From sequence record MN453779.2: 64,000 bases of DNA. The stretch is one strand, 5' to 3'. Made by a program: the position numbers and the translations under genes. Below, piece after piece: positions 19,996-49,800 of this stretch; position 1 is the first letter of the stretch; every line of letters starts with the position of its first letter. A model generated the notes under the pieces. It was not told the DNA's origin. It ran no database searches and saw nothing but the letters and a program-made list of their open reading frames with translations.

Positions 19996-20847
19996 TTAAC
20001 GCTTTCTTGGGACCATCATTTTCAGCGAATCACTAACACCTTTTGGATCAGCGTAAGCAAGGTGTTTCTTTAATTCTTCGTTGAAGAACTCTTTAAACTC
20101 TCTAGCAGAATCTGCGTAACGTTCTACATCATCGCGCACATCGTCCACAGATACACCATAACGACTCACAGCCTCTTGCATACCTCTACGACACGTCTTA
20201 TAAATGTAAGCCTTTGTAGCTAGTTCTACGAGTTCGTAGAACTTATCGTACATCTTAGGTGGGATTACTGAGAAGTGTTCGTCGTAAGCTAAAATTACTT
20301 TAGCGATCATATTAAACATCGCTGCGCCAGCATCTCTTATTAAGAAAGAGTTATTACCAGTCATGGTGAAACTAGTAAATGAACGCTGTACGTTACTGTC
20401 GTCCAAACCAGTCATTAGTCTATTTAGTGCATTACCCACCTGACCACCAGTTCCGCAAGCACCATTCCCACTTGTCATGTTATAACCAGATGCAATAGCG
20501 CGATTAAGATTACCCGGATACACTTCAATAACTGAAATAATCTTTCTACCGCCCGTAAGAAAATCTGGTACATTTACATGTATATGTCCGCCCTGCATGT
20601 TCGTTATTCTAGCGCTGCTTAAATCAATGATCTCACTCGAACCTCCTATCACGTTAAGCAACGGTGCAACCATCTTGAGAATTACTTTCTCACGGATACC
20701 TTGCTCAATACTGTATTCAGTGTTAACAGGAGACCATACAGAACCAAATCCGGCGTTTGGGTTATCGAACGCTAACTTTAACAAATATTCAGGAATATCA
20801 TTAACTCCTGATATTAAATTTTGAATAGAAAAGTCCACTGGTGACAT
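19996..20847 (-). CDS. Conserved hypothetical, possibly virion protein
   Basis: 283-aa ORF with AAGGA RBS. The virion role is inferred only. Confidence 0.65.
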   Translation of the reverse strand: MSPVDFSIQNLISGVNDIPEYLLKLAFDNPNAGFGSVWSPVNTEYSIEQGIREKVILKMVAPLLNVIGGSSEIIDLSSARITNMQGGHIHVNVPDFLTGGRKIISVIEVYPGNLNRAIASGYNMTSGNGACGTGGQVGNALNRLMTGLDDSNVQRSFTSFTMTGNNSFLIRDAGAAMFNMIAKVILAYDEHFSVIPPKMYDKFYELVELATKAYIYKTCRRGMQEAVSRYGVSVDDVRDDVERYADSAREFKEFFNEELKKHLAYADPKGVSDSLKMMVPRKR

Positions 20848-20919
20848 TGTGTTTATCCTTATAATTAGGTTACTTTAGGAAGTTACAAAAGATCAAAAAT
20901 CAATAATGAATAAACATAA

Positions 20920-20951
20920 ACCCTACCCTCCCAATTAAGGGAGGGTAGGGT
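20920..20951 (-). terminator. Terminator closing the minus-strand non-coding transcript
   Basis: ACCCTACCCTCCC-aattaa-GGGAGGGTAGGGT, followed on the minus strand by TTATGTTTATT. Confidence 0.7.
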
Positions 20952-20954
20952 AAC

Positions 20955-21595
20955 TTATGTTAAAGTTAAATGCTCATCCCACAAGACTATCCGTGACCCA
21001 CCTTGGGATCCTCAGATCCCTATGAATTACAGATAGTCTTGCAGGTCGTGCACTCACTGCACCACTTCCACCCGACGAAAGGTGGCATACAGTTTGCTCA
21101 GTTAGCTCTAGTCGTCTAGCAGAGAGGCCCTGCTCTAGGGCACTAACTTACGCGCTGCTTATAACGCATCAGATGGCCTAACCGGCAAACGATGCGGGAA
21201 CTCACTGTTAGGGCGTTCCTTAATTGAGCAAGTCAGGAATAGATGATCCCGAGTTACTCTAGACGTCTTTGTTTCATGTCGCAGTCTTACTTCGACTATA
21301 ACTTTCAGACTTATTTGTCGCTTAAACGACACTACGCTTCGTCTGAAAGGCAATACCTCTTTGTTTCACGTCCTGAGGTTTTCTATTTGGGACGATCCCG
21401 CCACGTAGGGATTTGGATGTCTCTTAGCTGTTTGAATGCACCGTTAGGATAAAGGAGATATGCTGACCGAGCATTATAACAACGGGAAACAATTAAGAGA
21501 CTACTAGGACGATCACTACTTTTGAATTACCAAACAGTGATCGAATAGGTGAACCATCAATCCCACATTCACCTAACCGGGATGGTTAAAGTAAA
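20955..21595 (-). ncRNA. Candidate large structured non-coding RNA (~630 nt)
   Basis: No credible ORF. More than 10 stems, several extended by G-U pairs only on the minus strand, a 5' H-type pseudoknot and a downstream terminator. Confidence 0.65.
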
Positions 21596-21624
21596 AAATT
21601 GATGATTCAAGAGGGGTGTTATCC

Positions 21625-21875
21625 ATGAGAGAAAATACTTTCTATTAAGCTTTGAGTTTCAACAAGATGTGATAGAGCATGAAGCAACAGAAGAGTTTAT
21701 TCAAACATGGATAACAATGTGGTCCGGCGACTGGAACTCGAATCCAGAAGACTTACGTCGCCACATTTTAAGTATGGTCCCTTTACCGATTTGGGCACCG
21801 CCGGAATATATAGATCGGATCTTTCTCTTTGTTGTCATGAACACCAATAGGTCTCATATTGTTTATTTACCTTAG
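21625..21875 (+). pseudogene. Small ORF with an apparent 1-nt frameshift after codon 3
   Basis: GAGGGG RBS and ATG at 21625 stop after 7 codons. One extra A in the A4 run at 21632-21635 would join it to the 21669-21875 frame. Confidence 0.4.
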
Positions 21876-22420: not shown

Positions 22421-22924
22421 CTATAGCTTGAGCGTGTATCCCATATTCCGACAAACTTTTCTGTACTCTTCAAGATTAAATACTCCATTACAATCCGTGT
22501 ATTTAATCAAAGTGTTCATAGGTAATCCGGTGATTTCACAAGCTATTCTACATGTGGGATAACGTTTACCGTTAACATTCCATCCGGTCTTTTTGCGTAG
22601 CTTTTTTAGAGCGGCGCGATGTTTTTCTTCTGAGTCCCACCAGTTATCTTTACTTGTCCCTTTCATAAGGTGTTCTGGATTACAACGCCTTCTATTATGA
22701 CATGTATGTCTAACCACTTCTTCTTTTGTTATTTCACCATTGAAGACTTTATATACAAACCTATGAACAGACTCATTCTTACCAAGAAACCCATTTGGAT
22801 GAAATTGACCATAACCACCGCTAAGAGATCTGGTCCATTCCCAACATTTGTTTTCTTGATTAATAAAAATATGTGGTTTGATTTTATCTTCAAAAATAGT
22901 AAACAGTTCTTGATTAATCGTCAT
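22421..22924 (-). CDS. HNH endonuclease inside the tRNA cluster
   Basis: CWEW...GYG...VHRF.Y...VVRHTCHNRRRCNPEHL motif. Start placed at ATG 22924 behind a GGTGA RBS. Confidence 0.88.
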   Translation of the reverse strand: MTINQELFTIFEDKIKPHIFINQENKCWEWTRSLSGGYGQFHPNGFLGKNESVHRFVYKVFNGEITKEEVVRHTCHNRRRCNPEHLMKGTSKDNWWDSEEKHRAALKKLRKKTGWNVNGKRYPTCRIACEITGLPMNTLIKYTDCNGVFNLEEYRKVCRNMGYTLKL

Positions 22925-46888: not shown

Positions 46889-49800
46889 ATGTCAACTTTA
46901 GCGAATGTACTTGAGCAGTATCAAATACAACATCTTCTTCCAACCACTCTATTTGATAAAATTATTGAAGAGTCAGGTTATACACCAGAAGGTGATGACG
47001 AAAGCTTTTACCAGCCTCTTTATCCAGACATTGAAGATTTTAATTATCGGCATGATACTACTACAGTTCATCCGATCTATCTGAATGATTTCGATTTTAA
47101 TATAGAAGAAGATCGAGAAAAGATTACTGCTCTACTACGTACCGAATATGAAGGAAACAATTTCGATACAGTCGCGAGCTGCACTTGTAAGAAACATCGG
47201 ACTAATGCGTACCTTGGTACAAGTTTCGTTTGTGACAGTTGTGGAGATCCTGTCACTAAACCACTTGGCGAGAAAATCGAAACCAAAGTCTGGCTTCGCA
47301 CTCCTGCTAATGTGTCAGGTTTTATTAATCCTACTATTGCGGAAGTGTTCTTTCGTAAACTTAACACCAAAACTCCTAAGGTAAATTTGATGGAGTATTG
47401 GATTAACAAAGAGTTTAGAAATGAAAAGCGTTTTAGAGACCCAAGTCATAGTGCGTTTAAAATAGCTTGTAAACTAGAAGCTTTCCGTTTGTCGCTCAAT
47501 ATCGAATTTGGATATAACGAGTTCGTTGACAATATGGATTTGATTATCAGATCAGCTATTGAACACGACACTAATGGTGTTCTGGATCTTACTGAAAAGA
47601 ACCGTGAACATTATGCGATGTTCTGGGAAAAATTCAAATCAAGAGCTGTAGCTCAACATCTCCCTTTGCCTAACAAGGTAACCTCTATTGTCGAGTCTGA
47701 CCAACGAGATAAATATGTTAATAAGGAGAAGAGTGATCTTGAAAAGATCTTTTACACCATTGCTGATATGTATCCAGCTTATGACTATCGTTCTACTGAG
47801 AACGCAGAGATCATGGGGAAGATCTTTACTAAACTCAAAAACATGATGTTGGATGTAACTGAATCTATCCTCTTCAAGAAGAAAGGGATGATTCGATATC
47901 ACGCTGGTGCTGGTAAGCTACCAATGACTGGTCGTTCTATTATCACAGGTGAATCTGGTGTTTGTCGCTCAGACACTATCATCGTTCCCTGGTTGTACGG
48001 AATAACTTGTTTGGATAAACACCTAACTAACTGGCTGTATCGGAAAGGTTATACCCCGCTGAAAGTAAAGGAGATTATACGTTCTGCTGCTAACTTTAAA
48101 CATCCTGTTGTAGAGGAGTTCTTTAACTGGGTAGAAAGTAATCGATACGCCATTGCAACGTGCGGTCGAAATCCTTCTATTCAGTATTTGTCAGCACGTG
48201 GTTTCTTTGTACAGTTTAACCGCGATGTAGAAGATAAATCCATCCGGATTCCGATCACTACAGTTAAGGAATTTAATGCCGATCGAAATGTATTTAGCAT
48301 ACATGTGGGAAAATAACTTAAACTATTTTCTCCAGTTAAATACACTCAGTCCCCCTAGGGTGAAAGTCCTAGTGAGGTACCTTTTGAATTGCTGGAAAGT
48401 CCACAAAAGTTACTTACCTAAGCTTAATTAGAAATGATTAAGTTAGTGGTGTCGAAAGACAGAAACAACAAGTAACCTGTCCTACGCTAAGAAATAATGC
48501 TAAGGGATACTAACAAGGGATAATCAGCCTCCGAGGATCTAAGTATATTCGTGATGAATAGATAGGATTCAGGTTCAACGACTGTCCCGTGGCTGGGAGT
48601 AGGGAAATCAGATTTCCTGAAGTATTAGGCACCTAACCGTGTAAAGACGTAGGTGATGGTATAGTCTGCTCCTCTAGTAATGTAGAGGCGGGTGTCTTAG
48701 CGCACCGGTGTTATTATGATAGCCAAAATGGCGAACGGTAATAACACGGACATAAGGTTCGACGGTAAACTTTTGCTGTCATTAAACCCTTTCAATTGCT
48801 GGAAACCCCTTAGAGCTTAATCAACTAAAGCGGAATTGGAAACAATAAACGTAAATGTTTGAAAATGATTAAGATTGGGCAATCAGCAGCGAAGCTTCTA
48901 AATACATTTGAGATGAATGGATACGAAGAACGTTCAACGACTACGTTCCCAGAAGCCTGGGATGATGAGGGCGCTTTAAAGCGAAGATATAGTCTCTACC
49001 GGTATGAAAGTATCGGATGGAAATCCCTGACCGGAATTCCACGTGATCTAGCGAATCACGAAGAGTCCTAAAAAGACGGAGAACAATAATGTTGTTAATA
49101 CCTGAATCCGATGGGTTCTTTGTTACTGAAACTGGTCGAGTATACGACAAAGACGGCAAAGAACGAAATTACTACACCAACGGAGACGGGTATATTACCG
49201 CCTCGATCTCTATTGGTGGTAAGTGGCAAACATTTGGGGTACAGCGGTTGGTCATGTTAGCCTATGAACCGATTGATAATCCAGATGACTACACGGTCAA
49301 TCATATTGACCTTGATAAAACCAATAACAACAAACCAAATTTAGAATGGCTGACAACAAAGTGGAACAATATCCATTCTGCTATTTTTAACAGTAAAGGT
49401 AAACGCCCTGTTGTCAGATGTTTGAATGGTGATGAAGAAATGTTCATCAAAGATGTGATGACGCTTCCCACAATTCTTGGTGTCGATATCCAGCAAATAT
49501 GGTTTGCAATTAAGAACTCAACCCAGATAAATGGATGGTCCATTTCACCGATCCCTTATGACGATAAAGAAATTATCCGATTATTGAACAGTTCCATTGG
49601 AACTGTTGATGGACCAGTGAGACCAGTTAGATGTTTAGACATCGAAACTGGAATTTGGAAAAATTACAAGAGTATGAAAGAAATGGCTAATGAATTTGGT
49701 GTTGGTATAACACACATCAGACATCGCTTAGCTACCTTTGAACGTCCTCGTATATTTCTCCAACGTTACATTATTCTGGATGATGGAGTTTCAGATGAGT

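Follow-up and report, generated by a model that had tools for sequence, protein, structure and literature searches.

Evidence for a family of large structured RNAs in OBP-like jumbo phages, with putative hammerhead ribozymes in relatives of the Aeromonas phage PS1 RNA

Comparison of the tRNA locus of Aeromonas phage PS1 with those of its relatives makes it likely that the minus strand from position 21719 to about 20915 encodes a stable, highly structured noncoding RNA about 800 nt long. It would represent, in Ferozepurvirus, an RNA family of OBP-like jumbo phages that has not been described before. Positions are those of the window, the 64-kb stretch of DNA analyzed, which is identical in sequence to bases 1-64000 of the PS1 genome (MN032614.2, genus Ferozepurvirus, 237 kb). 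In family members a type I hammerhead ribozyme would lie centrally, with a variable domain on its 5' side and a conserved, pseudoknotted module of about 250 nt on its 3' side. PS1 appears to have lost the self-cleaving hammerhead that other family members carry, and the middle part of its RNA seems to be of hammerhead ancestry, a feature absent from an earlier reading of this DNA (referred to below as the earlier note).

Results

Locus and boundaries of the RNA

The noncoding region lies between PS1_0014 (19996-20847, minus strand) and a tRNA-Leu(UAA) gene, which is itself absent from the annotation of the PS1 record. The record annotates no feature across 20955-21595. The longest stop-free stretches are 64-69 codons, no ORF is common across lineages and a PHROG search of the ORFs gave no match, in agreement with the earlier view that the region holds no credible ORF. 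The PS1_0014 product is a DUF7484 protein, for which relatives carry the name virion structural protein. Its identity is 64-73% with proteins from Pseudomonas phage OBP and from jumbo phages infecting eight further genera (Erwinia, Kosakonia, Serratia, Klebsiella, Pantoea, Edwardsiella, Shewanella, and Aeromonas) and about 47% with its counterpart in phage EL, values that make PS1 an OBP-like member of the phiKZ-related jumbo phages.

The RNA had been bounded at 20955-21595 (about 630 nt), which proved too narrow. The P0 helix, paired at 10/10 positions in 4/4 Ferozepurvirus phages, probably extends the RNA to 21719, so that it would start right after tRNA-Leu and measure about 800 nt. As the last product of a tRNA-glutaredoxin transcription unit, the RNA would be co-transcribed with the tRNAs, its 5' end would come from tRNA-Leu processing and its 3' end would be set by the conserved intrinsic terminator, which as a sequence feature is real and just as previously described (U-tailed, 20920-20951). 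We infer the transcript ends, abundance, and stability as a free RNA from sequence. Table 1 lists the features of the locus.

Table 1 Features of the candidate PS1 RNA and its surroundings (window positions unless an L-numbered comparison locus is given)
Feature	Position	Strand	Remarks
tRNA-Leu(UAA)	21720-21804	minus	Upstream neighbor of the RNA; found by ARAGORN; Rfam tRNA 46.7 bits
P0 domain	21618-21715	minus	About 80 nt closed by a 10-bp helix (21706-21715 with 21618-21627); the RNA probably begins here
P1 long hairpin	21551-21608	minus	10-11/11 bp in four phages; 6 both-side-changed cells; present in the MFE fold
P2 hairpin (stem f)	21510-21543	minus	8/8 bp in 4/4 phages
Ultra-conserved core	21278-21527	minus	88-100% identity of PS1 to relatives; includes helix 21494-21501 with 21419-21426
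Hammerhead-derived module (putative)	21356-21396	minus	Former tertiary-contact strand, degenerate core box, and stem II-like hairpin 1 with the first 11-nt repeat
Continuous helix (stem e)	21301-21350	minus	Surrounds a stem III-like hairpin; 9/9 bp, invariant
Stem II-like hairpin 2	21261-21287	minus	With the second 11-nt repeat
Pa hairpin	21197-21219	minus	5-bp stem, 13-nt conserved loop
Pb hairpin	21165-21196	minus	Part of 21100-21196
AGCG strand, conserved	21151-21160	minus	Part of 21100-21196
Pc, branched (stem d)	21100-21148	minus	Part of 21100-21196; pairs in 4/4 phages
Family-wide 3' module	20970-21100	minus	Pseudoknot strand, Pd hairpin (stem c), GAAGU strand, closing helix, and Pf
Pf long hairpin (stems a and b)	20978-21045	minus	Part of the 3' module
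Intrinsic terminator	20920-20951	minus	13-bp stem, U-rich tail; sequence conserved across the family
UUUAUGU and GAUCUUUUGUAA-like motifs	about 20850-20915, and same place in L133-L145	minus	Recur before the DUF7484 gene
Degenerate tRNA-like element	L145:3388-3465, L140:1599-1672, and same place in L144 and L139		Rfam 29.6-30.3 bits, just over the tRNA threshold

Two HNH genes were seen in the vicinity. In PS1 an HNH endonuclease gene (22421-22924, minus strand) lies between tRNA-Met and tRNA-Arg and is missing in AVP1, and in pAEv1810 another HNH gene (L004:2832-3884) directly follows the RNA, replacing the usual terminator region. In most lineages a UUUAUGU motif and a GAUCUUUUGUAA-like motif are found just past the terminator, before the DUF7484 gene; these may be a phage promoter.

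Folding and strand in the Ferozepurvirus phages

PS1 and three diverged relatives, AVP1, ACP1, and pAEv1810, were aligned over the whole region (n = 4). The earlier note had proposed a comparison of folding energy with shuffled controls, and the minus strand folds far better than its shuffles (MFE -254.8 kcal/mol, z = -9.3); the plus-strand values are -232.2 kcal/mol and z = -7.25. The minus strand proposed earlier is favored by this lower energy and also by one-sided changes that give U.G pairs on that strand only. The only changes in the P0 helix are five one-sided C-to-U changes opposite G, which are tolerated on the minus strand only. The orientation is the same as that of the tRNAs and the terminator.

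Five of the six stems previously listed (a, c, d, e, and f) pair in 4/4 phages, whereas stem b pairs in PS1 only. In the four-phage alignment both sides of the pair had changed in nine cells of stem a and in three of stem c. An H-type pseudoknot had been placed at the 5' end, but in the relatives no more than 2-3 of 5 positions pair in one arm and 4-6 of 8 in the other. Its 3' arms are used instead by a long hairpin, P1 (21598-21608 with 21551-21561), which on this comparative evidence appears to take the place of the pseudoknot. The P2 loop carries a 47-nt insertion in AVP1, ACP1, and pAEv1810. The 11-nt element reported to occur twice (21266-21276 and 21358-21368) is indeed present twice, in the loops of two similar hairpins.

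DNA identity between PS1 and the relatives is higher in the core than in the two flanking protein genes (82-93%) or in tRNA-Leu (56-61%). As the most conserved 250 nt are invariant within Ferozepurvirus, the fold given for that part is a prediction and not a covariation-supported structure.

A wider family with a conserved 3' module

A homologous RNA is found at the same locus in about 20 jumbo phages from nine host genera. The other lineages were reached via the flanking DUF7484 gene; nhmmer with a four-sequence Ferozepurvirus profile did not reach them and an exact 19-mer from the core gave no match in IMG/VR. Two search patterns were rejected: one made from the two 11-nt repeats matched A-rich sequence by chance and nothing else, and a first 3'-domain pattern gave four matches, all by chance and in coding sequences. 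At the locus in 13 isolates, an unannotated gap of 550-1200 nt precedes the sequence-conserved terminator in 13/13 and is itself preceded by tRNA or glutaredoxin genes, a synteny, upstream of the DUF7484 virion gene, that PS1 shares. Three IMG/VR contigs of 264-271 kb encode a 68-69% identical DUF7484 protein, and upstream of its gene each has an ORF-poor stretch of about 950 nt with ordered motifs in common with PS1. The ordered motifs are few, and on them the PS1 core may be homologous to the long 5' domain of the other lineages.

In a few isolate genomes small doubtful ORFs are annotated inside the gap. The hypothetical ORFs that overlie the RNA in AVP1 (L002:4029-4145), N1M2 (L138:2874-3386), Kc263 (L135:3527-3718), and D6 (L140:3187-3897) are not conserved between lineages and are probably mis-calls. 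In Aeromonas phages of the Chaoshanvirus and Ludhianavirus types, the noncoding stretch opens with a degenerate tRNA-like element.

Because MAFFT misaligned the five Aeromonas lineages that are most distant, anchors and a covariance model were used instead. The model, R1, was built from 12 sequences, none of them from Ferozepurvirus, and matches the window at 20970-21100 of the minus strand with 46.5 bits (E 4e-10); the three relatives score similarly. In the R1-guided alignment of 19 rows, one of which is a spurious opposite-strand match, 95.6% of the cells of the 3' module are paired versus 39-46% with slid partners; the alignment is fitted to R1 and leans towards the model, a bias that the slid controls share. 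Both sides changed in 18/23 pairs and 0/500 shuffles reached the observed values. The earlier note had suggested looking for covariation among homologues, and it is strong both within Ferozepurvirus and across the family. The R1 search found the 3' module missing in phages SXP01, Survivor, and pEt-SU. Note that R1 also gave a 28.3-bit match at L144:3822-3962 (minus strand), on the strand opposite to the true ZPAH34 module, which may reflect near-palindromic helices.

From its 5' side the 3' domain consists of the Pa hairpin, a second hairpin, the AGCG strand, a variable hairpin, an ACNGU strand, a covarying hairpin, a GAAGU strand, and a closing helix plus the long terminal hairpin. Ten different Pa stem sequences occur, all of which pair (5/5 in PS1). 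The Pa loop (21204-21208) pairs with the ACNGU strand (21089-21093) at 5/5 positions in 18/18 sequences, which would give a pseudoknot. At its center this interaction has A:U in the PS1 group; U:A occurs in AhC3_1, CF8, and five sequences of clade B, and the remaining seven sequences, OBP among them, have C:G. The pseudoknot strand may instead pair with the GAAGU strand, a competing interaction that fits 17/18 sequences by way of wobble pairs. When cut between fixed anchors, the distal part of the 3' module is exactly 127 nt long in seven diverged lineages (L133, L135, L136, L138, L142, L144, and L145), which suggests a length constraint.

A hammerhead ribozyme in the relatives

Rfam models gave only sub-threshold hammerhead signals, 23.7 bits for Hammerhead_1 in L124 (gathering score 34) and 15.5 bits for Hammerhead_3 in Survivor (gathering score 48.5). 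In the 13 sequences of alignment A7, all relatives of the PS1 RNA, the hammerhead core features taken from the Rfam consensus lines are complete: the CUGANGA box, the GAAA strand, and a cleavage triplet ending in H, with the invariant letters in place. The three-stem structure is 89% paired in A7 versus 29-42% with slid partners, and 11/21 pairs are compensated, including 3/3 pairs of stem I. Moreover, in 13/13 relatives 4-7 bp form between the stem II loop and the strand immediately 5' of stem I, in seven sequence forms; this pairing would be the kind of tertiary contact that natural hammerheads use. By covariation, these 13 relatives appear to contain a type I hammerhead of canonical form whose tertiary contact covaries. 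Cleavage is predicted after a conserved GUC. The cut would separate the 5' from the 3' domain in most relatives, and the RNAs of SXP01, Survivor, and pEt-SU would be cut 20-30 nt ahead of the terminator. A hammerhead pattern scan of metagenomes added one short family member.

A rearranged hammerhead in PS1

The hammerhead-derived module of PS1 was delimited by context alignment with the 13 hammerheads. Retained are the contact strand, a stem II-like hairpin with a complementary loop, a GAC-GAA(G/A)C strand, a stem III-like hairpin, and GUC; within Ferozepurvirus, both sides of the pair had changed in three cells of the inner stem of the stem III-like hairpin. The box, intact in 13/13 relatives, reads AUAGAAAA in PS1 and departs from the hammerhead core, and 12 extra nucleotides separate stem II from the GAA strand. 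GAC pairs with GUC within a continuous 10-bp helix (21341-21350 with 21301-21310, stem e). The strand order gives a two-way helix, and the three-way junction cannot form. The family hammerhead model, R2, found no match in PS1 or at any Aeromonas-phage locus with default filters, and with filters off the best PS1 match covers only the stem II part (5.6 bits, E 0.38). Sequence comparison thus indicates a rearranged ribozyme, most likely inactive: with an altered box, a 12-nt insertion, and the cleavage triplet locked in a helix, the PS1 RNA is most likely uncut.

Known RNA families and introns

The earlier statement that the RNA fits no known family holds, as an Infernal search of Rfam, both at the gathering threshold and at E <= 10, gave no match in the PS1 RNA region, whether to GOLLD, ROOL, group I introns, tmRNA, or RNase P RNA. 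The same search on L124 and phage Survivor returned only tRNAs and the sub-threshold hammerheads at E <= 10. Neither ARAGORN nor Rfam matched tmRNA, RNase P RNA, 6S RNA, or other housekeeping RNAs, and RNase P-like, tmRNA-like, and group II readings were dropped because no model matched. Full-text literature searches and a 2026 jumbo phage review yielded no account of this RNA, nor of any hammerhead from these phages.

Three segments had also been said to echo the Q, R, and S motifs of group I introns. This did not survive: RF00028 has no match here at E <= 10, and among the four phages the R-like segment does not vary, while changes in the S-like segment are matched by changes in its hairpin partner, so that P7 pairing has no support. 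The region is intergenic, from tRNA-Leu to the terminator, with no interrupted gene and no flanking exons. A full-length, unannotated group I intron does occur at 48702-49016 of the window (79.6 bits, RF00028). It overlaps a small ORF, PS1_0050, and is followed by an HNH endonuclease ORF, PS1_0051, and for these reasons a host gene is probably split at 48702-49788 (plus strand).

Discussion

The central proposal of the earlier note, a new large structured minus-strand RNA beside the tRNA cluster, is upheld by the covariation, the lack of an Rfam match, and the wider family; the 5' pseudoknot lacks support from the relatives and the group I echo falls away. By context and layout the nearest analogues would be GOLLD (RF01998) and ROOL (RF03087), although no similarity to either was detected. 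GOLLD and ROOL are phage RNAs encoded near tRNA islands and both form RNA-only cages. GOLLD shares its context and its layout of a conserved 3' part and a variable 5' part, but neither sequence nor structure matches at E <= 10, and the present RNA comes from OBP-like jumbo phages with gammaproteobacterial hosts. A self-cleaving ribozyme is not reported for GOLLD, whereas relatives of the PS1 RNA have a predicted one. ROOL RNAs are about 600-660 nt long, are encoded by phages or prophages near tRNA islands, and have several pseudoknots and no known protein partner; their fold is unrelated to that of the OBP-like phage RNA, which has no Rfam match. The hammerheads of the 13 relatives share the full core, three covarying stems, and a covarying contact with type I hammerheads that have a tertiary contact (Rfam clan CL00010), but score below the gathering threshold and are embedded in structured RNA of 0.7-1.1 kb; the PS1 copy lacks the core and junction features. 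The tRNA gene cluster of phage T4 also gives rise to small stable non-tRNA RNAs of unknown function, which are co-transcribed with the phage tRNAs and are far smaller.

A different explanation, to which we give a low probability, is that the region acts in cis as the trailer of the tRNA/glutaredoxin operon. It would then be a long 3' UTR whose structure protects the transcript, guides processing, or insulates the operon from the downstream late virion genes, and it would have no role as a free RNA. The RNA is always the last element before the conserved terminator, the promoter-like motif for the virion gene comes next, and in several relatives the RNA directly follows the glutaredoxin ORF rather than a tRNA and could therefore be its 3' UTR. 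However, a length of 650-1100 nt, an invariant loop-strand pseudoknot, and a ribozyme that has a tertiary contact are all more than a simple trailer requires, and such a trailer would account poorly for a core more conserved than coding genes and for a distal 3' part held at 127 nt.

It is much less probable that a self-splicing or catalytic element, either a group I-like intron or a cryptic hammerhead, is still active in PS1. Such an element would fit the hammerhead of the relatives, and it would also fit what PS1 retains: a stem II-like hairpin together with its contact strand, and the two strands GAC-GAA(G/A)C and GUC. Against it, no group I match was found at E <= 10 by a search that detected the true intron elsewhere in the window, no gene is interrupted, R2 failed as described, and the PS1 strand order is incompatible with a three-way junction. 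We likewise see hardly any chance that the region is decaying nonfunctional DNA (a mobile-element remnant or pseudogene) or a set of small protein genes: the nearby HNH homing endonuclease genes, the stop-free stretches, and the small ORFs annotated over the RNA in some relatives point that way, but the region is more conserved than its neighboring genes, its changes are compensatory, and its ORFs are neither shared across lineages nor matched by PHROG. A DNA-level signal such as a replication origin or packaging site is equally implausible despite the noncoding, repeat-bearing character of the region and a terminase gene a few kb away in relatives, since wobble pairs that differ between the strands and compensation over long range belong to RNA rather than to duplex DNA and the hammerhead of the relatives makes sense only as RNA.

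If the region does encode a stable member of this RNA family, the PS1 RNA, having lost the ribozyme signature, most likely remains in one piece and would probably work as the folded RNA itself, whether as scaffold, decoy, or RNA-only assembly as suspected for GOLLD and ROOL. A bolder possibility, which we put forward tentatively and think more likely wrong than right, is that the OBP-like, phiKZ-related jumbo phages have in this family an RNA machine of their own, built from two modules, in which the hammerhead frees a large 5' RNA and a compact pseudoknotted 3' RNA. The new ends, a 2',3'-cyclic phosphate and a 5'-OH, would be protected, and the 3' module would be either a subunit from which an RNA-only assembly is built or a functional fold of a new type, one that binds a ligand, is catalytic, or is directed at tRNA. 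Were this so, PS1 would show that the RNA can also work when fused and uncleaved. Predicted pseudoknots of ROOL and GOLLD turned out to be intermolecular contacts, and by analogy the covarying pseudoknot of the 3' module might be one as well.

Very few classes of large ornate noncoding RNAs have come to light, and every one of them has brought new RNA structural biology. The OBP-like phage RNA class is kept in cultured, easily handled jumbo phages of nine genera of Gammaproteobacteria and so is directly testable, and it offers a natural comparison between hammerhead-keeping and hammerhead-losing versions of one RNA. The annotation is also corrected, since every deposited genome either leaves the RNA region blank or has small ORFs wrongly called there. 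Finally, the metagenome scan returned about nine ordinary-looking hammerheads unrelated to the family (loci L152-L158, L160, L162, and L163), which have a longer stem I and lie on gut and environmental contigs.
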